Assembly (NCBI GenBank): GCA_965240325.2
Contig: OZ251225.1
Coordinates: 3,472,001-3,536,000, forward strand
Source of the DNA: Rebecca billardiae RCC1528
Taxonomy: Eukaryota > Protista > Haptophyta
Length of the DNA: 64,000 nucleotides
Direction of reading: 5' to 3'
A model generated the notes under the pieces. It searched no databases and was not told where the DNA came from. It worked only from the letters and a program-made list of their open reading frames with translations. The position numbers and the translations under genes are program-made. The stretch's first letter is position 1; every line of letters starts with the position of its first letter. Below are positions 798 through 58,404 of this stretch, piece after piece.

Positions 798-1224
798 GCG
801 CCGTGGCGTGCACGCGTCGTTCCGCTCCGGCCACTCGCGGGATTGCATGGTGTGGCTCCGCAGGACGCGTGATTCCGCCGAGGCCGCCGCTGCTCGGAGC
901 ACTAGCCGTCTCCGGACCAAACATGACCTCTCGCCACACGGTAGGCAGGCCCTCATTTGACTGTTAACTACTGTAGCCCTTTGGCGAGGGCCAGAGCCTG
1001 GTCCAGCCGCCGACCGAACACTGCACTGCCTGACAGTCTGCTGTGGCTCAGTCACAGTGAATCAGGACTCGGCCACTCAGGAGTCAGGTGAGGCTGCGAG
1101 TGCGAGCCAGCGAGGCATGCGGTGCACACTGTCCCGGGACAGTCTGCTGTGACGAAATGAGTCAATGACGCGTGCGGGCCCAGCAGTAGCCTTTTGTCAC
1201 ACCTTGCGAGATTCCATCTCCGTG

Positions 1225-2070
1225 ATGCGCGCTTGGGCCGTGCTCGTCATCAGCGTGGTCAGCGCGGCGACCCCGCCGAACCCGCCACGTGCGGTGCATC
1301 AAAAGACGCCGCGTATTGCGACGACCAACCCGGTTCCGCGTACGGCCGCCGTCCGCGCCATCCGTGGGCTATACGACGCGTTCAACGCGCGCGACGCCGA
1401 GCTGGCGGGCTCCTTCTTGACGGATGATTGCGTGTACGAGGACCTCCTCCTTGGGCCGGCCACGGTCTGCCGGGGCAAGGAAGCGTTTGTTGGCGCATTG
1501 TCGATGCACCCCGCCTTCATCTCAGACCGCATCGTGAATAGCCTCCCCGCAGGCATGCAACGCGGGCTGCCATCTCTCTCTCTGGAGCTCGTCGTCGACT
1601 CCGTGGCAGATGGCCGGGATGCGGTCGGCGTCGAGTGGCACGTCGAGCTGGCTGGGAGCGCGATTCCTCTCGGCCGTGGTCTGACGCACGCGATCATTTG
1701 CCCTCGCACTGGCAAGATCACGCGCGTCGTGGACATCGCGGAGGCGCCATGGCGGACAGTGGGCATCGCGGTCGCACCAGTCGTGAGCGCCATCAAGCGC
1801 GTGGCCCGGCTGGGCACGTCCATTCGCAGCGCTGATCGTGACAGCGCTGCCATCGCCTTCGCGACAGTGTGGTGTCTGATCAGTGCTGTCGCGGTGAGCT
1901 CGTGGCTCTTTGGTGCGGAAGCGTCGCCGCAAGCCGACGTGGACGCCATGGAGGCAGTGGTCGAGGCCATGCCGCCACCCACGCGCACACTGCCTCTGCC
2001 GCCAGAGCTGCTCAAGCAAGCAGACGTGCTCGGCTCAGCGTTTGGCTGGCGGCTTGGGCCGGGGCCATGA
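1225..2070 (+). CDS. SnoaL-like/NTF2-family domain protein with N-terminal signal peptide and a C-terminal hydrophobic segment
   Basis: AIRGLYDAFNARDAELAGSFLTDDCVYEDL...RGKEAF...VGVEWHVELAG..IPLGRG...GKITRVVD is an NTF2/SnoaL pattern. Leader MRAWAVLVISVVSAA. Confidence 0.75.
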   Translation: MRAWAVLVISVVSAATPPNPPRAVHQKTPRIATTNPVPRTAAVRAIRGLYDAFNARDAELAGSFLTDDCVYEDLLLGPATVCRGKEAFVGALSMHPAFISDRIVNSLPAGMQRGLPSLSLELVVDSVADGRDAVGVEWHVELAGSAIPLGRGLTHAIICPRTGKITRVVDIAEAPWRTVGIAVAPVVSAIKRVARLGTSIRSADRDSAAIAFATVWCLISAVAVSSWLFGAEASPQADVDAMEAVVEAMPPPTRTLPLPPELLKQADVLGSAFGWRLGPGP

Positions 2071-2282
2071 TGCCTACTTGCAGAGCGGACGACGACCGGC
2101 GCATGAGCGGCCGTCGGCGGGCACGCGCCAATATGCCGACGGTGACATGCAAACGACCCGAAGGCCTGACGGGCGCCGCACTGTGACTGCTGACAATTTG
2201 TGAGTACTCACAAGTCAGTAGTCACATGACGCCAACAGCATCATGGCCCTACATGATAACTACACATCGCGGACTCGTCGGA

Positions 2283-2705
2283 ATAACTGGTCCGCGGATA
2301 TGACAATGGCCGGATGATTATAGGCGGCGGCTACTAGTACTAGTAATAATTGTCATGGACATATATTGTCTAGCTGTAGTCATAGTGCAGGCACATTAGA
2401 CTCATGAGTACTGACTACTAGTGTGACCCGCAGCATAATTCCGCTGCCGGGCTGCCAGCCGTGGCCGTGATCAAAACCGATCAAAATGACTCAGTAGCTT
2501 ACTATCAAACATTAGTGACGCTGCGGCGGAGGACGAGACAGCAGGTTCAGTCATTCGTCTTATTGACCTTCGACGCTTTCTGAGTCTCAGTCTCCGATCC
2601 ATCATCCGTAATCGATCATGCGCGGCTGCAGGCGCATCAAGCCACCGTAGACCGCTCCTGCGAGCAGCCGTACCGGGCAACTGACAGACGAACTGACGCG
2701 AGCGA
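2283..2705 (-). pseudogene. Decayed tandem duplicate of the aquaporin 3' end and downstream sequence (partner copy 2714-3043)
   Basis: 2516-2705 aligns to 2902-3043 with 9 insertions and 2 substitutions. ATAACTGGTCCGCGGAT starts both units (2283 and 2714). Confidence 0.9.
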
Positions 2706-2929
2706 TAACACTCATAACTGGTCCGCGGATGACGATGCCAAGTGGCCCGTCGGATGAGTACTGTGATGAGTTACTGACTTACTGAGTACATGGCGCGGAT
2801 TAACAGATGATTACGCTGCCAGTGTGAGTGTCGACGGATCCGATGACGAGTATTGACGACATGAGTCGCATTCGGCCAGCATAGCTATATATAAATTATA
2901 ATGACGCTGCGGCGGAGGACGAGACAGGT

Positions 2930-3607
2930 TCAGTCATTCTTGCCCTTCGACGCTTTCTGAGCAGCCTCCATCATGCGCGGCTGCAGGCGCAAGCCACCGT
3001 AGACCGCTCCTGCGAGCAGCGTACCGGGCAATGACGCGAGCGAGCCGCACGTGTCCGCGTTGAGCATGGCCGTGACTGCGGTGTAGGCTGGGTTCATGGA
3101 GACGGGGATGCCGAACATGCCAGGGCACACGAAACCGGCGACGATGGAGCCAGTTATCTCAGGAATATACGGCATTCCCGCCTCGAAAATTGCCACCAGG
3201 AGCAATGTCACTGCGAATGCCTCTGTGGCGGCGGCATGGTGCATTGGCACGTGCGTGGCGAATGGAATGGTGCCCACCTGTGCGACGGTGGTGTCTGGTA
3301 GCGCCGACAGAGCCCAGACGAGAATGGCCGGCGCGACGACCATCTGACCAACGAAGCGCGCGAGCGCGTCGGCCTTTGGCACGACCCCAGCAGCCGCCAA
3401 CGTCAGTGTTACCATCGGGCTGAAGTGCGCGTCCATCTGTAGCCACCCGTTCGTGACACCAACGATGCGGAGGAATACAATGATGACCCCATTCGCCACC
3501 CACGCATTAGGGAAGGGCCAGCTTGGAAGCGAGAGGAAGAACCCCAGGACGAACGACGTGAAGACGGCTTCGATCGCGACCAGCGCGAGCAACTTCGTCG
3601 TCGGCAT
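2930..3607 (-). CDS. Aquaporin/MIP-family channel, divergent (SIP/unorthodox-like)
   Basis: 225 aa with about 6 hydrophobic segments. Loop B reads DAHFSPMVTL (SPM in place of NPA); loop E reads SMNPAYT; conserved E in TM1 and TM4 (AIEAVFT, ATEAFAV). Confidence 0.75.
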   Translation of the reverse strand: MPTTKLLALVAIEAVFTSFVLGFFLSLPSWPFPNAWVANGVIIVFLRIVGVTNGWLQMDAHFSPMVTLTLAAAGVVPKADALARFVGQMVVAPAILVWALSALPDTTVAQVGTIPFATHVPMHHAAATEAFAVTLLLVAIFEAGMPYIPEITGSIVAGFVCPGMFGIPVSMNPAYTAVTAMLNADTCGSLASLPGTLLAGAVYGGLRLQPRMMEAAQKASKGKND

Positions 3608-39498: not shown

Positions 39499-41779
39499 TC
39501 AGCACGCCACACGTTGGCGCTTGCCCAGCTGCGAGGTGATCTGCTCAATCTTCTGCGCAGCGCGCAGCTTGATGGCGCGCAGCAGGTGCTTGGGCAGCTC
39601 CGAGAACTGTGGCGAGTGCTGCACGGCCTTGAGGTGGTGCACAATGTACTGGATGCACTGCGCGCTCAGCTCGGGCGCCTGGCACTGGTCCGCCGCGAGC
39701 AGGATGCTCGCCGCGTTGTCCCTGTTGAGGTGGAAGAGGAGGTTCTGCACGCACAGCTCCTTGAGCGCCGAGAGCCCGAACCGGTGCGCCGCGCCGAGCA
39801 CGAGGAGCGCGTTCTCGTACGTGACGGTCATCTCGGTGTGCCCGTTGTAGCAGTGCCGCAGCACCGTCTGCATCGTGCCCGGCTCGATCGCGTCGACGCT
39901 CAGCTCGGGCGGGCTGCTCGCGCCGTGCGAGCCCAGCGCGGCAATCATCTGCTTGAAGACGGGCGAGGCGGCGGCGAGGATCACGCGGTGCGCGTAGATC
40001 TTGTGCTCCTGCGGAGCGCGAGACCGAGAGGGCGCGGGGCGGCGGGGTGGGTGAGCGCGCGCGCGCGCGCGCGGGCCGCGCGCGCGCGGTGGCGGTGGCG
40101 GTGGCGCGGCCGCTCGGCGGCGCGCCGCACCCCGACGCGGATGACGATGTCGCAGAACTCCTCCGAGCCCGCGTACGAGTCGAGGGAGGGCAGCGCCAGC
40201 CCGCGCAGCCCGAGCTCGGCCGCGGGCGACTGCCAGCGCTCTTTCGAGACGATGACGAGGAGGGGCGCGTCCTGCGTGAGACGCAGCGCGGCAGGCATCA
40301 CGTGCGTGCGCGGCGCAAGGTTGAGGTGCGCCGGCGTGAGCTGGTACTCGGGCACGCCGACCACGTTGGTGCACGAGACCGAGAGCCAGCCCGCCGCCGT
40401 CTGGCCCCACGCCCACACGTCGCCGCCCTCGGTGAGCGCGAGCGAGAAGTAGGCCGAGGCGGCGATGCCAATCACCTTCCTGCCGTCGAAGCCGACGATG
40501 CGCTGCGGCGTGGGCATGCACTCCTCGCCGTCGTCGCACTTCTCGAACTCGCACCCCTCGCTCAGCCCCAGCCTCCCGCGCCGCGCCGAGCCGAACGCGT
40601 ACACGGCGCCGTCGTCCGAGAGGCAGAGCGAGTGCCACTCGCCGCACGCCACCTGCACGGCGTGCGCAGTCAGGCTGTCGAGCTTGATCGGGCGCGGCTG
40701 GTACGGGTCACCGTCGTCGTCGGTCGGCATCGCGTGGAGCTGCTTCGACGAGACGCCGAGCCGGCCGTACTTGGCGCCGCCCCACGCCCACACCGAGCCG
40801 TCGTCGCACACGGCCACGTTGTGCGCGGAGCCGCACGCCGCCTGCACCACCTTCACGCCGTCGAGCGCGGTGAGCAGCGTCGGCCGCGGCTGGTACGGCG
40901 CGCCGCTGCCCTCGTCGACCGGCAGGTTGGAGAGCTGCTCGTTGCCGTCCACGTCCGCGATGCCGAGCAGGCCGTAGTGCGCGCCGCCCCACGCGTACAC
41001 CGCGCCCGTGTGCGTGACCGCCAGGTTGTGGATGTTGCCACACGCTATGTAAGACACCTGAGCACATCAAGCGCGCGGCGCGCGCGCGTGGCGCGGGCGG
41101 AGGGGGAGCCAAGCGCAGGGCGGCGGTGGGCGGCGGAGGCGGCGGTGAGCGTTTGCGCGTGCGCCCGCCCCACGCCCGCCGGGATGCGCCCGCCGCGCGT
41201 GGGCGATCTCGTGCGGACGAGGTCGGCCGGGAGCGCGAGAGCGCGCTGCTCGGTGGCAGCGGCGGCGCTTCGGCAGGGAAGGGGGCGCGGCCGGGTGCGC
41301 ACCGTCGTGCCGTCAAAGCCGTCGACATGCATTGGCGTAGGCTGGTACGGGTCGCCGTCCTCGTCGAGGGGCATGGACGAGACATCCGCAGGCCCAAGCC
41401 GCCCGAATATTGCGCCGCCCCATGCCCACACCCGCCCCGCTTCCGTGAGCGCGAGCGAGTGGTTGGAGCCACACGAGACCTGCACGAGCCGGCAGCCGCC
41501 AAAGCCGGAGATGCGCACGGGGAGCGGCTGGTACGGCAGGTTGTCGTCGTCGGTCGGCATGTCCGCCGACGCCGGGGCCGCGAGCTTGCCGTAGTTCGCA
41601 TCGCCCCACGCATACACCTCGCCCGTGTCTGTGAGCGCGAGCGAGTAGTCCTCCCCACACGCGACCTGCGAGAGCGTCACGTGTTGCAGGCCTTCAATGT
41701 CGAAGACGCGCGGCAGCGAGCGCGTGTTTCCGACGGTGTACACCTCATCGACCGTCCCCGCGTGCTGCAGGGCGATCAT
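39499..41779 (-). CDS. RCC1-repeat + BTB/POZ(-BACK) protein (RCBTB-like); introns 41058-41302 and 40009-40130
   Basis: Repeated QVACG..HSLALT..G.VYAWG...YG.LG units, then FCDIVIRVG|EHKIYAHRVILAAASPVF. The start is uncertain. Confidence 0.87.
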
Positions 41780-45779: not shown

Positions 45780-45847
45780 AGAGAGCGAGAGCCGAGCCCG
45801 AGACTCGAGAGAGAGTCGGAGCCGAGCCGAAAGAGAGACCGGAGACG

Positions 45848-45874
<27 letters not shown>
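45780..45874. repeat. GA-rich degenerate repeat ending in (GA)n
   Basis: Directly visible. Confidence 0.85.
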
Positions 45875-46125: not shown

Positions 46126-49100
46126 TCAGCGCGGTCGCGAGGGCGGCATCGGCGACGGGCCCGCCGCCGTGCGCGCTCCGGCCGCGAGCCCGCGCTTGCC
46201 CGCCGCGGAGATGTAGCCCACGCCCGCAGCCGCGGCGGCGGCGCTGTTGCTGCCGTGCCGCGCACTCCTGCGCGCGCCGCGGCCGCTCGGCTCCGGCTGC
46301 GGCGGCGCGGCGGACGGGACGCGCTCCATCGGGTACGCGACAAGTGCCTGCACGCCCCGGCCGGCCGCAAGGTCGCCAAAGACGGCCGCCGCGTCCTCCA
46401 TGCCCATCACGGGCGAGCGGCGGCGCGAGCTCGCCCACATCGCGCCAAACGCGCTCGAAAAGGCCTGCGCGTTCTGCTGGGAGACGGAGCGCCAGAGCGC
46501 CATCGCTGGCTCGGCGGTCGGCTCGTCGAGCAGCGCGCGCCACGCGGCGTCGCTCACGCCCTCCGGCTGGGGCATGCGCGCGAGCGTGGGCTCAAAGTCG
46601 AGGGAGCTCGGCAGCGCGGCGCCGCCTGCGTCGAGCGCGCTCGGCCGCAGGCGCGCGCTGCCCGGCGGCGCGTCGGCTGCGCCGCTCGACCCCTCGGCCA
46701 GCCTGATGCCGAGGTGCGCGCACCACAGGTACGTGCGCAGCGAGCGCGCGAACGAGTCGCCCTCGATGCGGACGCCCACCTCGGCGTCGCGGTCGCCGAG
46801 GAGGTCCCTGCGAGCGCGGCGGGGGAGGGGCGCGGCGCAGCCGTGAGCGCGCGCGGCGCGCAACGGGCGCGCGCCGCGCGCGGCGCGAGTGCTGGCGCGG
46901 CGCGCGGTGCACGGCCGCACCTGTCCGTGATCGTCGCCGTGCCCGCGACCACGACGCGGTCGTCCGCGATGGCGATGCGCGAGAGCACGCGCACGGGCGT
47001 CGCGTACGGCACGCCCTCCAGCGCCACGCACGCGTGCAGCGAGGAGAGCGTCAGATAGGCCTCGGGGTGGTGCACGCCGCGCGCGCGCAGCTGCGCATAC
47101 ACGGCCTCGAGAACCTCTAGCGCGCCGTCGAGCGGCTGCGCGGCGCTCGGCTCGGCGGGCAGCGGCAGCAGCAGGATGGCGTGGAACGGCGCGCGCAGCG
47201 CGTGCGCGAGGCAGATCCGGTCGATCAGCGCCTGCGCGACGCGGTGCCGCAGCGTGCCGGTCGAGCTGGCCGTGGCCGCGCCGCCCGGCAGCCCCCGGCC
47301 AGCGGATGAGGCGCGCGCGACCGACGGCCGGCCGAGCGTCGAGCGCCGGCCGAGCGTCGACTTGCGCCCGCCGAAGAGCGAGGCGTTCCGGCTGTTCGGC
47401 GCGCTCCCCGCGCCCAGCTTGGGCGGGTGCTCCTGCGCGTCCTCCACCAGCGCGCTCTCGACGTACACGAAGCGCTGCGCCGCTGCGATCAGCGAGACCA
47501 GCGCGTCGTGCACCGAGGCCTCGTGCGAGCAGCCCGCCGACCACGTCGCCGCCGAGCGCATCGCCTGGCACACGAGCTCGCCCTGCAGCTGGTACGGCGT
47601 GTACCCAGGCGGGTAGTCCGGCGCGGGCAGGATGGCGGGCACGGGCGCGTGCTTGGGCAGGCTCGGCCGCCGCAGCAGCGTCACCTCCGCAGCGGCGCGC
47701 GCGGCGCTCGGCCTCCGCTGCGCGTTGAGCCGCGTGGGCTCAACGCGCCTCACGTGGTTCCAGACCTCGGCAAAGTGACGCGCCACGTCGCGCGCGGGCG
47801 CGGCGAAGAGCTCCACGGCGAGCTCGTGGTCGAGGGAGAAGTGCGCGGACGCGAGCGCGGCGCTCCCGCCCGCCGCGCCGCCCACGCCCGCGCCCGCGCC
47901 CGCGCTCGAGCGCTCGGGCGCGCCGTCGGCCGCGCCCGCGCCGCTGCCCACCGAGCTGGCCCCTGACGGCCGGTGGGACGGGTAGGGCTGCGCCACCGCC
48001 GCGCTGCCGGCAGCCGCGGCGGCGGCCGCCACCGCCGCCTCCAGACTCTGCCTGGGCGGCCGGCTGGCGAGCTCGTCGCGCCCAGCGGGCAGAGGCGAGC
48101 CCTCAATCCCGCCGACCAGTGGCGAGCCGTCGCCCCTGCGCTCCAGCGGAGAGCCGGCGTCCGCGCCGCCCAGGGGCACGCCCGAATCTCTGTCGGCCAG
48201 CGGCGAGCCGCTCTTCCTCATCGCGGGCTTCAGCGCGGGGCCGCTTCGTGCCGCCGGCGGCGACGAGGCGCGCATGCCGCTGCTGGCCGCCGGCGGCGGC
48301 GTGGCGCGCGAGCGCAGGGCGCCGCTGCGCGGCGGCGTCGGCGAGCCTTTGTCGACAGGCGGCCGCGCAGCCGCCGCCGCCGCCTCCGCACCGCGTGCCT
48401 CCCCCTCGCCCGCCGCTGCCGCAGCCTCCTCCTCGCCCTGCGGCGCGGGCTGCTCGACGGCAGCGAGCATCTCCGCCAGAGAGCCCACCGTGCGCGTGAA
48501 GTCGGAGATCGTCTCGGTCATCGGGTCCACGTCGGTCGAGCGCCGGCGGTGGCTCGAGCCGGGCGACGAGGGCGCGCGCACGTCCGAAGCGAACGAGACT
48601 TGCGACGGGCGCTGCGTGCGTGTGCTGGTTGGCCCGGGCTCGGTGCGGCGCGCGGGCCTCGGCGCGGTGCCCGCGGACGGGCGGCCGCTCGGAGCCGCGT
48701 GGCTGAAGGGCGCCGAGGTGGTGCCGCCCGCCGAGCCGCCCGGGCGATCGAGCGGCGGCAGGCGCGGCGGCGGCGGCGCGCCGAGCTCGGCGGCCACCGC
48801 GCCAGTGGCGGCGCCGCGCTCGTCGTCGCGTGCGCGCGCGGCCGAGGCCTCCGCCGCGGCCGCGGCGCCGCGGGCGCGCGGCGGGCTGCGATCGGAGGGC
48901 ATGACTGGCGTGGGTAGCGGGTGCGGCGGGCGCACGAGCGGCGCCGGGACCACCGGCGATGCCGGCTGCGGCGGCGAGGGCGGCGGCTGCACGCCCGCCT
49001 CCTCAGGGCCCTCAGGCACCACACTCACGCCGCTCATGCGGTCAACCGGCGTGTCCGCTGCCGACGCGCCCGGCCTCGCCGACGCGCCGGCGCCGGGCGG

Positions 49101-52100
49101 CGGCTGCGGCGTGATCAGCGAGACGGCGGAGGAGGCGCCCGGCTGCCGCCGCGCGGCTGCGCCGAGCGGCTCATCCAGCTCGGCGGCCGAGATGATCGCG
49201 ATCTCCTGATCGACCGCAACCATCCGGCCCCCGTGCACCGCGCCGGGGCTGAAGTCGACGTCGAGCGAGGACGCGCTCACGCCCGCGCCGAGCGCGAAGA
49301 GGCCGCCCGCGGCGTACGCCGACTGCGCCTCGAGGGTGGAGGAGGGCTTGCGCGGCGCAGGCGGCGCGAGCAGCACGGCGATGCCGGGGTGCAGCCGCTG
49401 CAGCGCCTCCAGCTGATCCTGCGGCGTGCCTCCGGCCTCGAGCGAGCCGAGAGAGCGCTCGGCGGGGAGCAGCAGCGGCAGCGGCGCGGCGGGCGAGCCG
49501 CCCTGCACGATGCGCGAGCGCTGCGCCGGCGAGTAGTGCAGGTGTCGGCGCGAGGCGCGGCGCACGGCGCCGATCGGCGAGGCGCTGGCGCTGCTGCTGC
49601 CGCTGCGCGCGCTCCCCGAGTGCGCGGCGTCCACGTCCGCCTCGGTCGGGCACAGCAGGATGCGCACCGCCACGCCCTCCGCCGCCTTGGCCGCGAGCAG
49701 AGCGCCGAGCGTGGGCTCGGCGCGCTCGCCCCGCGCGTCGGCGCGCGCGCTGGCGCCGTCGAGCGAGTGCACGCGGCCGAGCAGCCGCAGCTGCGGGCTC
49801 ACCACGCGCGCGGAGATGAAGATCTCAGACTTTGCGCCGTCGAGGGCGTGCGTGACGGCGCCGAGCCACGCGCGCCGCCCGGCGTGCCACGCGGCCGCGC
49901 ACCGCCGGCGCGCGGGCGCGTACGAGCCGTGCGCGTGCGGCTTGGTCCAGTCCGACTGCGCGTGCGTCGCGCGCACCGCCGCGAGCCACTGCCCGAGCTC
50001 GCGCTCCGAAGGCGCCTGCAGCTGCAGGCTGCGGCCGGGCGCGAGCAGCGTCGCGATGTGCGGCGTGCGCGTCGGCTGCCGGCGCGAGAAGAGAGGTCGG
50101 CCGCCCGCGCCCGCGCCGAGCGCGAACATCTCGGGCGCGCCCACGCGCATCTCGAAGGAGCGGTCGAAGAGCCACACCTCCTCCACGGCCTCGGAGTCCG
50201 GGTGCAGCGAGTAGCACAGCAGGTTCGACTTGAGCACGAACCACGGGCCGGCGCCGCCGCCGGCGCTGAGGTGCGCGCTCGCGGGCGAGGCCGGGGAGAG
50301 CGGCGCGACGCGCGCCGCCTTGCGCGCCGGCGTGGGCGCCGCCGCGCTGCCCGCCGTGTGCGAGAGGCGGCGCGAGAGCTTCTCGTTCTCGGCCGCGCTC
50401 GCGTCGCCGCCGAGCCGGACGGAGGGCGCGCACGAGCCGATCAGCCGCGAGAGCCAGCCGCCCGCCGGCGCGCGCGGAGCGGCCGCGGGCAGCGCGATCG
50501 CGCGGCCGTGCGGCGTGCGCACGAGCATCGTGCCCTCGCGCCCCTTGTCCCACCCGTCGCGGCGGAAGGAGAGCGCGGAGACCTCGAGGAACGCGCGCAG
50601 CGGCGGCGACTCCCACGCGGCGCTCTGCCCGACCAGCGCGCGCAGAAAGATCGCGAGCTGCATCTCGAGCTCCGCGGCGGAGACGCCCGTGAGGTGCAGA
50701 GGGGGCACGCGCATCTTGACCGTCGCCGCGCCGCGCGCGTCCGAGCCGTCCACGCCGCCGCGCCGGTGCGCGGACGCGCGCGCGCGCGCGCGGTACTCCG
50801 CCAGCGCCGCGTGCAGCTGCGCGAACTGGCGCGCCGTGCGCAGGATCTCCCAGCGGAAGCCGCGCGTGTGCTCGCGCGGGCGGTAGAAGAGGCGCACGCG
50901 GTAGCTCAGCAGACGCAGCTCGGGGATCGACAGGAGGCCGCGGCCCACGCGCTCGTCGTGCTCGGCGCTCAGCCGCTGCGTGCCCTCGGACCAGCGCGAC
51001 GAGCGCACCGAGAACAGCGAGCGCCGCCCGTGCATGCCCAGCGCGTCCGAGCGCCGGCCGGCCACCGACGCCCGCGACTCGGCCGAGACGCGCCGGCCGT
51101 GCGGCGCGCCGCTCGCCCACGGCGGGCGCAGCGACGCTGCGCGCGAGCGGGGCTGCTCCGGGCTGGCTGGCTCGCTCTCATACACGCTCCCGCCGCCGCC
51201 GCCGCCGCCGCCGCCGGAGCGCAAGAAGCGCGTCATCAGGTTCCCGGCGCTTGGGCTCCGCATCCGGCTGCGCAGCGGCGGCGAGGGCTCGGTGGACGCA
51301 TATGGCGTGACGGCCGCGCCGCGCGACGGCCGCATCGACGGTCGACCCGAGGGCGCGCGCGAGGCCCCGGCGCTGGTCGCGCCGCGCGCGGGCATGAGCG
51401 CGAGCGATCCGTCGAGCGGCACCTGGTCCACGGTGAGCTCGACCGCGGGGCCGTCGAACTGGTAGTCCGTCTTGCCCGCCGGCGCCTCCGCGCGCGTCGC
51501 GCGCAGCGCCGCGGCTATCGAGAACTGGCCGTGCGGCCGGCGGCGCGATAGTCGGCTGCTCGGCTCGGGCGAGACGGCCATGATGTGCCGCAGCATATCG
51601 GCGGGGGTGAGCCGCCACTGCGAGTTGAGGGACGGGTCGCGCGAGACGGCGAGAGCCTCGGGCCCCGCGCGCTCCTCCGCCCCGGGCACGCTCAGCATCG
51701 CTCCGCGCTCGTCTGCCGAGCGCGAGCCGACGCCGTCGCCGGTCGGCCCGCGCGCGCGCAGCGGGCTCGTCAGCCGCTCCTCCCCGGGCTCGGGCGCGGA
51801 GCTGCCCGTCGACTCGAGGCTGGGGGTGACGATGACTGGCAGCACGCGCGCCGCGCCGCCTCGCACGCCGCCCGTGGATTTGGAGGACACCCTGCCGGGC
51901 GCTGCGCCGCTCGACGGCTCTGCGCTCGCGCCCTCCGCGCGCTCGGCCGGCTGCGAGGCGCGCGCGGGCTCGGCGGCGCCGGCCGCACTGCCGGCGCCCG
52001 TGGCGGGCGGCAGCGCAAGCGGCTCGAGCGCGGAGGCGGACGCCGAGGCCGCGGCGCCATCGGACGCGCCCGCGGCGCCCCCGCCGACGCTCGACGCGGG

Positions 52101-53685
52101 CTGCGCGGGCGAGGCCAACGGGCTCGCCTGGATGGCCGGCAGCGGCTCCACCTCCATCCGCGCCGCGCCCGCCCAGCCTCGCGAGGGCACCTTGCGCGCG
52201 GGCGCCGGCTGCCGCTCGGCGCTGGGGCCGTGCCCGACGCGCGGCGGCGATGAGGTCGAGCGCCTCGACTTGGACGGGCTCCCCGCGCCGCCGCCGCCGC
52301 CGTCCTCGCCCTCGTCGGTGATGGGCGGGAGGCGTTGCAGCGCCGGCGCCGAGAGGCGGCGCCGCTCGATGATTGCGCTCGGTGGCACAAAGTCGTCGGC
52401 GGCCATCTCGTCCTTCGCGTCGAGCGCGGCGAGGGCGAGCTCCTCGGCGCGCTGCACGCCGGAGTACTGCCGCCACGCCGCCTGGATCTGCCGCGCCGCG
52501 CGGTACACGACGTGCGACTCGTCGTGCGACAGCCCGGCGCGGTCGTATGCCGAGAGCTGGCGGTCGACCCGGCCGCGCAGCTGAAGCAGCGCGTCGTGCT
52601 GCGCCTGCGAGCGCTGCTCGAGCTTGAGCAGCGAGCGGCTGATCGCGTCGACGCGGCGCGTGAGCGCGGGCATGGCGAGCAGCTCCGACGCGGTGGGCCG
52701 CTCCTCCGGGTCCTTGATCAGCATCGCCTGCACCAGCTGCGCCAGCTCGGCCTTGGCGTCGTCCGGCGGGCGCGGCACGCTCACGTCACGCCTCACAATC
52801 TCCATCACGAGATGGCCGAGGTTCTTGCCGGCGAACGGCCGCCGGAGGAAGACGAGCTCGTACAGGATGCAGCCGAGCGACCAGATGTCCGCCGGCGTCG
52901 AGTAGGGCTTGCCCATCACCTGCGGGTGCGCGCGCGCGCGCGCGCGAGCGGGGGTGTCGCGCCGTCGAGCGCGGCCCAGCGGACGCGCGCGCGCGAGCGA
53001 GAAGGGAGCGCGCGGATGGATGGGGGCGCACCATCTCGGGCGAGAGGTAGTATGGCGTGCCGCAGATGGTCTCGGCGAGGTGCGCGGCGTTCGAGAGGTG
53101 CCGCGAGATCCCAAAGTCGCCGATGCGCACCAGCATCCCGCCCTGCGTGAGGAAGACGTTGCCCGGCTTCAGGTCGCGGTGGATGATGCTCTGCTCGTGC
53201 AGGTGCTCGAGCCCCCACAGCATCTGCGCGAGCCACGAGTACAGAAGGTCGGTGGCGAAGGGCTCGCCCCTGGCGGTCTGCTCGGTGATCCTGTCCGCCA
53301 TCGTGCCGCCGTCCGCGTACTCCATCACGATATCCAACAAGCCCGCCTTGTGGTTGATCACGCTTCCGTAGTACTTGATGATCACCGGGTGGTGCACCGA
53401 CGCGAGGATGCGCACCTCCGTCGAGGCGGCCGTGCGGTCCTTGGGTCCCATGTCGCCGATGGAGAGCCGCTTCGACACCACGTACAGCGACGGCTGCTGC
53501 GCGTGCTGCAGCAGGTACGCCTCGCCGCTCGCGCCGCGGCCGAGCATACGCAGCTCGCGAAAGTCGCTCAGCGGCACGAGGCCGTCCTCGCCGGAGTCAA
53601 GCTTGAGCTGCGCCGCATCGATCGTGTTGCGCACGAGGGGGCTTGGCGGCGGCATGCCGCCAGACGCCCTCGCTGGGCTGCGCAT
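46126..53685 (-). CDS. NEK-family kinase + IQ + PX + PH + phospholipase D (PLD1/2-type) fusion with degenerate HKD motifs; introns 52920-53031 and 46808-46920
   Basis: Kinase: GRGASG, HRDLKPGN, DFGISR, ICGTPYYLSPE, DIWSLGC. IQ: AARQIQAAWRQY. PLD1/2 blocks: AFLEVSALSF, AKSEIFI, ARDVARHF..WN, CQAMRS..WSAG, LGDRDAE. The reading frame is continuous between the introns. Start is at 53685 or 53655. Confidence 0.82.
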
Positions 53686-54111: not shown

Positions 54112-55521
54112 TCAGCGCACGTATGCGCGGCCCTCGAGCAGCCGCGTGCGCGGGCATTTTGCGATCTGCTCGCTGAGCGCCTCGATCCATCGAGCGCGCG
54201 CGGCCTCATCCGCCGCCCGCAGGAAGTGCCGCACGTGGTCGCGCGTACGCAGCTCGAACACGCACGCACCTGCCGCCCCACCCGCGTCGGGCTCGCAGCT
54301 GAGCGCGGCGCCCATGTCCTCAACCGCCACCACGACGCACGCGCGCTCATCCGCGCTCGCCGCGCCGTCGTACAGCGCGAGGCACTTGGCGCGCAGCACG
54401 GCGCGCTGCGGGGCGCGTGGCCAGAGCCCCGTCAGCGCCGAGCGCCGCCACAGCTCGCCCTGCAGCACGGGCTCGCTCTGGAACCACTCGTCGTGGCTGA
54501 AGGTGTGGTCGGCTGACTCGATGGCGAGCTCGACCGCGAGCGCGTCCGGCGAGCTCACGAGCAGCGTCGCCTGCAGCGCGGCGGTGGCCACGTCGTCCAC
54601 GGCGTCGAGGCCGCGGCGCACGGACTGGCCGTGCTGCGCGCCGAGCCTGTGCGTGGCGACGCCGACAGCGGCGTCCTTCGCGTCGTCCGCGACGATGCGC
54701 GTCGCGCGCTTCGCCGCGTGGTACACGCCCATCGTGGCGGTGACGACGGCGCTGCCCACCTCAGCGGCCGCCTTGGCGCGCGCGTCCGAGGGCTCGCTGC
54801 CGCCGAAGCGCTGCTGGTAGAAGGCGGTGCCACGGATCTGGTCCGCGGTCACGCGGCCGACGCTCTTGATCACGTACGTCGTCGTGCTGAGCACCGCCGT
54901 CGACGCGCGCAGCGTCGCGCTCCCAACCGCCTGCGCGCTGTCGAGCGCTCGGCTCGTCCGCTCGGAGACGGGCGCGTCTGCCGCCGCCGCGCTCGTCGAG
55001 CTCTGCACGGCGCGGCCGAGCGCGCCCAGACCGGCGCCGAGGACGCTCGCGCCGCTCAGTAGCGCAGTGGCCGCGAGCCGCCCCGTCGCCTCGATCGCGG
55101 CTGCGACCGTGTTCTGCCCCGGTCCGTGCTCGCCGGCGTCGCTGCTCTCGACGGCGACCGCAAGCTCGCAGGCCAGCCACTCGCGCAGGTGGCTCGTGTC
55201 GGCGCCGGGCGCAAAGACCAGGGCGAGGCATTCGCCCTCGGAGGCGGACGATTGGATGGTCCACTGCTCGCGCGGCGAAGCACTGCCGCCGCTCGCGGGA
55301 GAGCGTGACACTGAGATGGTCGCGCCGCGCTTCAGCTGGATGCCCGCCGCCTCGCTGACACGCACGAGGGCGACGTCGGTGCCGGCCGCGGCGGCGGACG
55401 CCGAGACAGGGCCTTCCGCAACGAGTGTGAGCTGCTCGAACGAGCCGCCCTCGCCGCCGAAGCTCACCTTGAACAGCTGCGCATCACCAGCAGGGAGGGC
55501 GGCAGGTGCTCCGACCGCCAT
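54112..55521 (-). CDS. Senescence/spartin-associated domain protein with a C-terminal PH domain
   Basis: Amphipathic block from VAAAIEATGRLAATALLSGA to VATHRLGAQHG (HRYG-like motif). PH: LQGELWRRS...CLALYD...FLRAADEAARARWIEAL. Confidence 0.7.
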   Translation of the reverse strand: MAVGAPAALPAGDAQLFKVSFGGEGGSFEQLTLVAEGPVSASAAAAGTDVALVRVSEAAGIQLKRGATISVSRSPASGGSASPREQWTIQSSASEGECLALVFAPGADTSHLREWLACELAVAVESSDAGEHGPGQNTVAAAIEATGRLAATALLSGASVLGAGLGALGRAVQSSTSAAAADAPVSERTSRALDSAQAVGSATLRASTAVLSTTTYVIKSVGRVTADQIRGTAFYQQRFGGSEPSDARAKAAAEVGSAVVTATMGVYHAAKRATRIVADDAKDAAVGVATHRLGAQHGQSVRRGLDAVDDVATAALQATLLVSSPDALAVELAIESADHTFSHDEWFQSEPVLQGELWRRSALTGLWPRAPQRAVLRAKCLALYDGAASADERACVVVAVEDMGAALSCEPDAGGAAGACVFELRTRDHVRHFLRAADEAARARWIEALSEQIAKCPRTRLLEGRAYVR

Positions 55522-55946
55522 TGTCGTCCTTGGCTCAAGAACTGCATCACGACTGTTGAACTGAGTTGCCCATTGACGATATGTACATGATGCATGTATC
55601 ATACAGTAAGCTAAGAGCAGTGTAGTACTACTAGTAGTCACAGAACGACTGCCTGTCACTAGTGTCAGTAGTTAGTGACTTAGTGTCACCCGATGCCAAC
55701 GGCCCAACGATCCGGAACTCGTCCATCTGGCGGAGGAATTGTGTGCATCACTGCAATCTGCACCGCCGTGCCGCTGACAGGCCTCCTGGTGAGCAACTTT
55801 GGTGCCGAGTCCCCGGCGTGGGTACTGGGTTCCCGCGGCGTGACTTGAGTGATCGCGCCCAATGGCACTGCGAGCCAGCACCAGGTTGGCATCGGTGGGC
55901 GCACATGCTTGCTGGCGCGTGTACAGGCCAGCTCGAGCCGCCAGGC

Positions 55947-58095
55947 CTAGCGCTGCGCCGCCTGCTGGGCGACCTGCGCCTGCCGCTGCCGCGCGCGCTC
56001 CATCGCCGGGATGTAAATGTCCGGCGCCGCCTCGCACAGCGCGAGGTGCGCTGCTGCGGCCTCGCGCATGGAGAAGGCCTCGCCGAGCTCCTGCGAGCGC
56101 GCGCGCGGCGGCGCGGTGTGTGCGCGCGCGGGTGTTCAGCTCCGTGCACGTCGCTCCGCGCCGCGCGCGGCCGAGCGCCAGAACGCTGCGCGGTGCGCCC
56201 CCGTGCGCGCCCGCCGCTCAGTCGGTGCGGCCGCGCGCGTCCGGCTCGGCGTTGCGCGCACCTCCTTGGTGCGCAGCAGCGCGATGGCGCGGTCGTAGCA
56301 CTCGATGGCGCCCTTGAGGTCGGAGCGCTGCCACTTGAGCTGCGCGCTGTGGATCAGCGCGGCCTCGGAGAGCGGGTCCGCCTCGAGCGCGTGCGCGAGC
56401 AGCGTCATCGCCTGCTCGCCGCGCACGCGCGCGCGCGCGCGTCGCAGCGCGGCCGGGCGCCTGAGGGTCGGGCGGCACTGAGGGCCGAGCGGCGCGGTCA
56501 CGGCGCCGCCCCTCGCGCCGCGCCGGCCGCGCCTCGGCGCGCACCTCGTCGATGGCCTGGCCCTGCGACTGGACGAGCAGCGCGTTGGCTTTGTTGACGT
56601 ACGCCGCGGCGAGGTAGTGCCCGCCCACCCGGATCGCCTCCTCGAACTTGCCCAGCGCGCCCTCCATGTCGCCGGACTCGAGCAGGATCTCCCCGTGGAA
56701 GTTGAACACCTCCGCACTCTCGGGGAAGGCGCCCTCCGCCTCGCGGAAGGTCTCCGCCGCGTCTGTGCGCAGGCCGAGGCGGTAGAGGCTCATCGCGAGC
56801 TGCACGTACGTGAGCATCACCGACTTGTCCACCGCGAGCGCGCCGCGCAGCTCCTCCACCGCGCGCTGCAGCTCGCCGCGCAGCATGAACACCTGGCCGC
56901 GGTGGCAGCCGCAGTCCGCGCGCTCCTCGCCGCGCGCGGCCGCGCGCGCGCCGTCCATGTCCGCCAGGCAGCGCTCGAACTGCTCGCGCTCGAAGTAGAG
57001 CGAGCCGCGCTTGAGCAGCACGTTGACGCTCTTCTTTTCGAGCGCGAGCGCCTTGCCGTACTGCTCGAGCGCCTCGTCCAGCGAGCCGCGCACGTGGTAG
57101 AGCGTGCCGAGCATGTTGTGAGTCCGCCGCCCGTCCGCGCGAGCGCCCGCGCCCGCGCCGCCGCCGCCGCCGCCGCCGCCGCCCGCTTTGCCCCACGCGG
57201 CGAGCGCGGCCTCCCAGGCCGCGAGCGCGTCCGTGTACCGCTGCGCGTGCATCAGCGCGATCGCCTCCTCCTCGAGCAGCGTCGCGTGCTGCGCGGGGCT
57301 CGCCGCCGGGTCGCACGCGCGGCGCGCCGCCTCGGCCTTGGCCACATCCGGCTTGGCTCCGTTCGCCGGGCTGAGCAGCGCGCGGTGCCCAACGAACGAG
57401 TCGAAGAAGGTGCGGATGAAGACGGGGGAGGGCAGGGTGCGCGGTGCGCCGCTCGCCACGCGCTCCTCCGCGCGCTTCCGCCCGAGCATCTTGAGCACGC
57501 GGTCGGCCGCCTCGACCGTCGGCTGCTGCTCGAAGCACTTGAGCAGGCAGCTCGCGGTGTAGTCCAGCAGCGCGCCCGCGCAGTCACCCGCCTTCTCGCG
57601 CGCGGTGCCGCGGCGGTTGAGCGCCTTGACGTACGTGGGGTTGATGTCGAGCGCCGCGTCGCAGTCACGCACGCACGCCGCGTAGTCCTCGAGCATCGAG
57701 TGGCAGGCCGCGCGGTTGCAGTAGAACACCGACACCTGCTCGTCCCGAGGCTCGGGCGCGAGCTCGATCGCGCGCGTGTAGTCCTTGATGGCCTGGTCGT
57801 ACTGGCGGCCGGAGAAGCGCTTGTTCCCGCGCTCCTTCGCACGCTTCGCCTCGTCCCACGCCTGCGCCGGCGGCTGCGAGCCCGCCTGGGCAGGCTTGGC
57901 GCCAGCCTGCGAGGCGCCTGACGGCTGCTCGGACCGTTGCTTGCTCGCGGCTGACGTCGCATCGGCCACCTCGTAGCCAGCGTCCACCGAATGGTCGTCT
58001 GCCTGCGCGCGAGCCCGGCGTCGCCGGTACAGCACCGCGAGCGCCACCGCCGCGGCGGCCGCGGACGCCGCAACCACGATGGCTCGCCCACCCAT
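55947..58095 (-). CDS. TOM70: Mitochondrial outer-membrane import receptor Tom70; introns 56412-56544 and 56091-56261
   Basis: N-terminal TM anchor followed by RRRR. Clamp TPRs (KERGNKRF...YCNRAAC...YVKALNRR). LPSPVFIRTFFDSF linker, then multiple C-terminal TPRs. Confidence 0.85.
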
Positions 58096-58404
58096 CGCTG
58101 CACGTCGCGCGCGCGACCGCGGGCCGAGACACGTTCGTGATTTTGAGCCCGACTTATTCGCGCGCGTCACGTTTATTCCGCCGCGTTTATTGGACGCGTC
58201 TCGACTCCCGATTTTCTGCCGCGCGCTCGATGATGCGAGCTGTCACACAGATAGATCGCTGACGCCTGTCGCCTGACGGCTGAGGCGTGAGTCCTGGTAA
58301 CGACTTGAGTCGGCGTCCCAGGCGGAGGCGGGTTGCCAACAGCAGCTGCACTGCTCAGCTCGAAGTGTTTCAGACTGTTGTCCCAGTGTGACACGTAGTT
58401 GCAG

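Follow-up and report, generated by a model that had tools for sequence, protein, structure and literature searches.

Kinases of the NEK family have roles at cilia and in the cell cycle in eukaryotes other than the haptophyte alga considered here. Proteins of the PX-PH-phospholipase D (PLD) type, represented by mammalian PLD1 and PLD2, fungal Spo14 and plant PLD-zeta, belong to the HKD enzymes, in which the histidine of the HxKxxxxD (HKD) motif makes a covalent phospho-intermediate and has been mutated to abolish activity (PMC6008594). The pseudo-PLDs of the FAM83 family anchor CK1 kinases (PMC6008594), and NEKs of trypanosomatids bear C-terminal PH domains (PMC1266030). Here we describe a gene that would join a NEK to a whole PX-PH-PLD module. 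It lies on the minus strand, at positions 53685-46126, of a 64,000-nucleotide stretch of Rebecca billardiae RCC1528 (contig OZ251225.1, positions 3,472,001 to 3,536,000; this whole stretch is referred to as the window), and comprises three exons with about 2,444 codons. The host is a very GC-rich flagellate alga, and the GC content of the region is about 79%. We consider it fairly probable that this is a single three-exon gene for a protein of ~2,444 residues, in which a PX-PH-pseudo-PLD part serves an active NEK by binding a membrane or lipid headgroups and by scaffolding. In protein order, an active NEK Ser/Thr kinase would be followed by a helical, IQ-like stretch, a long disordered linker and the PX-PH-PLD module, derived from the PLD1/2 family. 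The coordinates of all features are collected in Table 1.

Kinase, PX-PH-PLD module and gene model

The domain content is directly supported by similarity searches and by predicted folds; all homology searches were run with single-exon references. Pfam finds a protein kinase domain (Pkinase) in exon 1 with an E-value of 9.4e-38 and in residues 3-84 of exon 2 with 1.4e-12; at default thresholds no family beyond the kinase is found in any exon. The assignment to the NEK family is a best-hit ranking: among solved structures, NEK1 (4apc; 4.8e-35), NEK7 (2.6e-28) and NEK2 (6.5e-28) lead the matches of exon 1, and NEK7 and NEK1 are the top matches of the kinase C-lobe in exon 2. RSK, CHK2 and PLK stand behind the NEKs at 1e-22 or weaker; RSK1, the next non-NEK kinase with an aligned stretch, falls short of NEK1 in E-value by about 12 orders of magnitude and of NEK7 and NEK2 by about 5. 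The first-pass annotation of this DNA had described the kinase motifs as intact, and the translations and the alignment with NEK1 bear this out: the glycine-rich loop (GRGASG), the beta-3 lysine, the alpha-C glutamate, HRDLKPGNVFL, DFG, the activation-loop threonine and GTPYYLSPE are all present. The kinase thus resembles the NEKs, and judged by these residues it looks capable of catalysis.

What had been called an IQ motif behind the kinase is there in part. The core, IQAAWR, fits IQxxxR; measured against the consensus [ILV]QxxxRGxxx[RK], a glutamine occupies the glycine position and the basic residue at +10 is missing. Pfam's IQ model gives no match in this stretch, even at E up to 10, and a core of this kind could arise by chance in a protein of such length. 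The further proposal of a Ca2+/calmodulin-regulated kinase rested on this one weak core, undetected by Pfam, and we do not retain it.

For the remainder of the protein, the evidence comes from relatives and from structures, since the matches of Pfam to both PX and PH are below threshold (0.0051 for the PH stretch). Among solved structures, phmmer retrieves human PLD1 (4.8e-12) and PLD2 (2.8e-11), with the similarity falling into three collinear blocks, and a HMMER search yields 307 PLD relatives among 1.84 billion representatives, with a best E-value of 3e-22. Those of the relatives that were scanned with Pfam are all PLDc proteins, and several possess PX and/or PH as well. The conserved blocks of PLD1/2 are all present in order, the C-terminal ones included. 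AlphaFold2 models exon-2 residues 648-1000 with a predicted local distance difference test score (pLDDT) of 73 and a predicted template modelling score of 0.70. The predicted PX domain (model residues 15-134) matches SNX19 with Z 10.5 and a root-mean-square deviation of 2.2 Å, and CISK-PX with Z 10.4; the PH domain, inside which the disordered insert lies, matches the PH domain of TAPP1 with Z 12.6. On the basis of these fold matches and of the BLASTP alignments to the relative P0003, the PX and PH domains are real. In a model of exon-2 residues 800-1999, i.e. without exon 3, the core blocks reach a pLDDT of 85-97 and are separated by long disordered loops; Foldseek ranks the catalytic domains of human PLD1 and PLD2 as the best matches to it (E 2e-11, template modelling score 0.53-0.55), and bacterial and plant PLDs come next. 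According to this model, the two-lobed PLD fold is present. The earlier description of a complete PX-PH-PLD with all PLD1/2 blocks in order agrees with the phmmer result, the P0003 alignments, the fold and the profile match of exon 3 given below.

The gene model corresponds to what had been proposed from the frames, a product of about 2400 amino acids after removal of two introns: both introns are bounded by GT..AG, and about 2,444 codons remain. A TGA stands in frame four codons upstream of the ATG of exon 1. When intron 1 is spliced out, the stretch homologous to NEK1 residues 24-196 (exon 1) meets that homologous to residues 199-287 (exon 2) without a gap; when it is retained, the frame ends as a truncated kinase. 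Splicing out intron 2 yields ...ITDR/DLLGDRDAEV (the slash marks the junction), in agreement with the family consensus ...INxRSMxGxRDSE. Furthermore, exon 3 matches the PLD family profile at columns 773-865, directly past HKD2 (hhalign, probability 94.8%, E 5.5e-8), and the relative P0002 at 0.001 (BLASTP). Both splices are supported, because homology runs on without a gap across each junction.

The two introns are of near-equal length (113 and 112 nt), and simple repeats rich in GC make up most of both. Within intron 2, Tandem Repeats Finder reports arrays of period 7 and 9 at 46830-46915. The repeat-rich make-up of both introns may bear on the origin of introns in the host genome.

The active site of the PLD module

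When 40 relatives are aligned to the protein by MAFFT, the loss of the catalytic motifs is directly visible. At HKD1, all 40 read HHEK....D, as opposed to HGGR....D in the alga. The catalytic histidine is replaced by glycine in HKD1 and by leucine in HKD2, both lysines are replaced by arginine, and both aspartates are kept; the Asn and Gly residues of the HKD motifs are gone, and in the HKD2 context both asparagines have become threonines. The DWW and IENQFF blocks are altered as well. The Pfam PLDc model describes nothing but the HKD motif, and for this reason it gives no match here at E up to 0.1. The replacement of both histidines and both lysines thus speaks for the claim that HKD1 and HKD2 are catalytically dead.

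The remainder of the domain is better preserved. Among the 128 alignable columns that are near-invariant (at least 85% among the relatives), 72 are identical in this protein (56%), and the changes are enriched in the catalytic columns: 10 of 13 in the HKD motifs versus 46 of 115 elsewhere (Fisher p 0.012). HxKxxxxD occurs twice in 126 of the 150 best relatives, and the remaining few are fragments or are still recognized by Pfam PLDc; none of these 150 is as thoroughly degenerate as the protein described here.

Because the nucleophilic histidine is replaced in both motifs, phosphodiesterase activity is very unlikely, and the PLD module would be a pseudoenzyme. It seems highly improbable to us that the domain is still an enzyme by way of other residues, or on another substrate such as nucleic acid or another phosphodiester. 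Such an enzyme could build on the fold, on both motif aspartates and on the basic residues at the lysine positions, all of which are kept, but the residue of the covalent intermediate has given way to glycine in one motif and to leucine in the other, and both motif asparagines to threonine.

A degenerate HKD1 is also seen in the PX-PH-PLD relatives P0019, P0020, P0028 and P0049 from other organisms (HNEK, NIKK, IPRK). The second HKD motif is kept in P0020, P0028 and P0049; in P0019 none is recognized. Judging from these sequences, HKD1 has partly decayed outside this alga as well.

One reading frame and the rival explanations

The coding signal is continuous from the kinase to the PLD domain. 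Exon 2 contains no stop in 1,999 codons, whereas the five other frames hold 6-28 each; in the linker between kinase and PX there is likewise none, compared with 1-9 in the other frames. Across exon 2, the GC content at third codon positions (GC3) is 0.88-1.00 per 80-codon window and at least 0.80 in all 30-codon windows, and the high-GC3 phase passes unbroken through the kinase C-lobe, the linker, PX, PH, both PLD halves and the 435-codon loop that separates these halves. The intergenic DNA on both flanks of the gene has a GC content of 0.52-0.58, that of the linker is about 0.8. Since frame and GC3 are continuous and DNA of the intergenic kind is missing, a terminator, an intergenic spacer and a second 5' untranslated region could not be fitted in. 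From this continuous signal we infer one mRNA for kinase and PLD.

Several observations weigh against a single functional fusion. In a gene with 79% GC, long open frames are more easily kept by chance, and the same region holds an antisense open reading frame of 876 codons. Within its family the PLD part diverges most, with 26% identity versus a mean of 43% in 577 core columns. Alignments of active PLDs, moreover, had informed the AlphaFold2 models, and a good fold is partly expected. As a gene, the antisense frame (plus strand, 48921-51551) was rejected: it mirrors the GC3-rich coding frame and is without homology. Such a frame is best seen as a by-product of composition, and the length of an open reading frame alone says little here.

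One alternative to the single product is a pair of products, in which an internal promoter, alternative polyadenylation or unrecognized splicing would set the PX-PH-PLD-like part apart from the kinase, and the open frame between them would be incidental. The ease with which frames stay open in GC-rich DNA would suit this explanation, as would a linker of ~450 codons that is of low complexity, matches no family and contains ten in-frame Met codons. Yet this linker, free of in-frame stops, has a GC3 of 0.90-0.99 in the phase that it shares with both flanking domains, and it is far richer in GC than the intergenic DNA. We therefore regard two separate products as quite unlikely.

In the databases searched, the combination of a NEK with a PX-PH-pseudo-PLD appears to be found nowhere else. 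The kinase motif HRDxKxxN is present in none of the 150 best of the 307 PLD relatives, and for neither part does the HMMER search of the 1.84 billion representatives yield a close orthologue, with nothing below 1e-30. Word searches with the kinase C-lobe among proteins of 1,100-3,498 and of 357-1,137 amino acids return generic NEK-like kinases about 40% identical to it, none with a PLD. No match is found in two metagenome scans, and no usable one in the ESM Atlas when searched by features; a word-based protein search with the PX-PH-PLD part gave no match and is uninformative, its candidates being swamped by low-complexity words. A self-search reveals no paralogue within the 64-kb window. In the papers searched, no NEK-PLD fusion is described. 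The first-pass annotation had known of no such fusion either, and the protein searches, the metagenome scans and the papers searched are in line with this.

Maintenance of the PLD part and its decay both have points in their favour. A once-active PLD could have been fused to the kinase, or be read through from it, and could by now be a neutral, functionless relic. Neither HKD motif survives, nor do the IENQFF and DWW blocks, the part is the most divergent of its family, and no orthologue was found in the protein and metagenome searches, all of which would suit this explanation; the divergence as such would fit a new function no less than relaxed constraint. Against decay stand some 1,800 codons past the kinase that are without stop or frameshift and retain a strong codon-position periodicity, as well as the 56% of near-invariant scaffold columns that are kept and the enrichment of losses in the catalytic ones. 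The PLD core is also predicted with confidence in the model. Furthermore, each HKD motif keeps its aspartate and a basic residue, which looks like remodelling and not like random decay. Maintenance is favoured by the intact frame, the periodicity, the scaffold columns and the confident core, and a decaying relic appears rather unlikely to us.

For the fusion protein that we favour, a mechanism can be sketched. The PLD module has kept its predicted fold and most of its scaffold residues and would have lost catalysis; PX, PH and pseudo-PLD together would most likely form a membrane- or lipid-headgroup-binding, scaffolding module, which would position the NEK on a specific membrane and perhaps gate it there. 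The two Lys-to-Arg replacements and the two retained aspartates would agree with the survival of a phosphate-binding pocket. As a rather doubtful extension, this pocket might bind a headgroup (phosphatidic acid, or PC/PIP2) and act with PX and PH as a coincidence detector that allosterically activates the NEK at one membrane, e.g. at the base of the flagella or the haptonema. A lipid-gated NEK of this kind would, if true, be the first covalent kinase-pseudo-PLD signalling unit.

Neighbouring DNA and comparison with known systems

The neighbours of the gene include the Senescence-domain, TPR-repeat and BTB/BACK genes listed in Table 1; for the TPR-repeat and BTB/BACK proteins, no functional link to the NEK-PLD gene is obvious. 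Past the stop codon, at 45783-45874, the GC content falls to ~0.5, and a (GA)13 microsatellite and a 24-nt GA-rich repeat occur; this stretch is probably 3' untranslated region or intergenic DNA.

Table 1. Features of the NEK-PLD gene and of its neighbours, with positions in the window
Feature	Positions	Strand	Basis and remarks
Exon 1	53032-53685	-	218 codons; start codon at 53685; 42-residue N-terminal lead, then kinase N-lobe and catalytic/activation loops to ...YYLSPEM
NEK-type protein kinase domain	52668-53559	-	Spans intron 1; Pfam Pkinase and NEK1 alignment
Intron 1	52920-53031	-	GT..AG, 112 nt, GC 0.83, rich in (CG)n
Exon 2	46921-52919	-	1,999 codons + 2 nt, single frame, kinase C-lobe to HKD2 relic
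IQ-like core (AARQIQAAWRQYS) behind helical stretch	52461-52499	-	Read from translation; weak
Ala/Ser/Pro/Arg/Gly-rich linker, kinase to PX	50970-52322	-	~450 codons; no family match; GC3 0.90-0.99; no in-frame stops
PX domain	50577-50936	-	BLASTP 2e-14 to Pfam-annotated PX of relative P0003; AlphaFold2 fold match
PH domain, split by disordered insert of ~90 residues	49941-50552	-	BLASTP 1e-11 to PH of P0003; fold match
PLD catalytic domain, first half	49140-49940	-	phmmer to PLD1 6u8z and PLD2 6ohm; core blocks at pLDDT 85-96; Foldseek
HKD1 relic, HGGRMVAVD...SAAEL	49176-49235	-	MAFFT with 40 relatives, which read HHEK....D...GG.DL
Low-complexity loop between PLD halves (position of the PLD1 'loop')	47835-49139	-	~435 codons; pLDDT ~30; GC3 0.88-0.93; no in-frame stops
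PLD catalytic domain, second half up to HKD2 relic	46921-47834	-	phmmer, alignment, model, Foldseek
HKD2 relic, LSRIAIADD...GTATITD	46926-46985	-	MAFFT with 40 relatives, which read HSK....DD...GSANIND
Intron 2	46808-46920	-	GT..AG, 113 nt, GC 0.88, essentially GCGCGGC-type simple repeat
Exon 3	46126-46807	-	C-terminal PLD blocks and tail; stop at 46128-46126
Senescence (spartin-like) domain gene, upstream neighbour	54115-55659	-	Pfam 3.3e-13; then PH-like domain 1.7e-4, below cut-off
TPR-repeat protein	56221-58170	-	TPR_1 2e-23
BTB/BACK protein	39502-40647	-	BTB 2.9e-17

The steering of kinases by pseudoenzymes is under active study, with FAM83-CK1 as the model case, and a covalent fusion of NEK and pseudo-PLD would add an independent example. 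It would suggest that PLD folds have repeatedly been reused as non-catalytic modules for kinase targeting, and would give a testable link from membrane lipids to NEK kinases. The case carries limited weight, being confined so far to one little-studied alga and to a function that we infer.

Each half of the protein has a known counterpart. The kinase is closest to NEK1, NEK7 and NEK2, with which it shares HRDLKPGNVFL, the activation-loop threonine and GTPYYLSPE, and a helical stretch follows it as in NEK1 and NEK2. Trypanosomatid NEKs also carry a lipid-binding domain C-terminal to the kinase, but there it is a lone PH domain and here a whole PX-PH-pseudo-PLD. With the PX-PH-PLD family the second half shares PX, PH, a two-lobed catalytic domain with a loop in its middle and the C-terminal blocks, all in the same order; homology is found in every conserved block, and the predicted fold agrees with the crystal structures of PLD1/2. 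It differs from that family in the destruction of both HxKxxxxD motifs, the missing Pfam PLDc match, a loop of ~435 residues, the greatest divergence at the core columns, and the NEK kinase and 450-residue linker ahead of PX.

In its presumed use, the module comes nearest to FAM83 and PLD5, which likewise possess a PLD-like domain without the catalytic histidine, put to non-catalytic use alongside a Ser/Thr kinase (PMC6008594). No exon matches DUF1669 in Pfam, and the resemblance to FAM83 would be functional only. FAM83 proteins are vertebrate-specific, have one pseudo-HKD domain (DUF1669) and bind CK1 non-covalently, whereas the protein of R. billardiae would carry a two-lobed domain of the PLD1/2 type that is covalently fused to its NEK.

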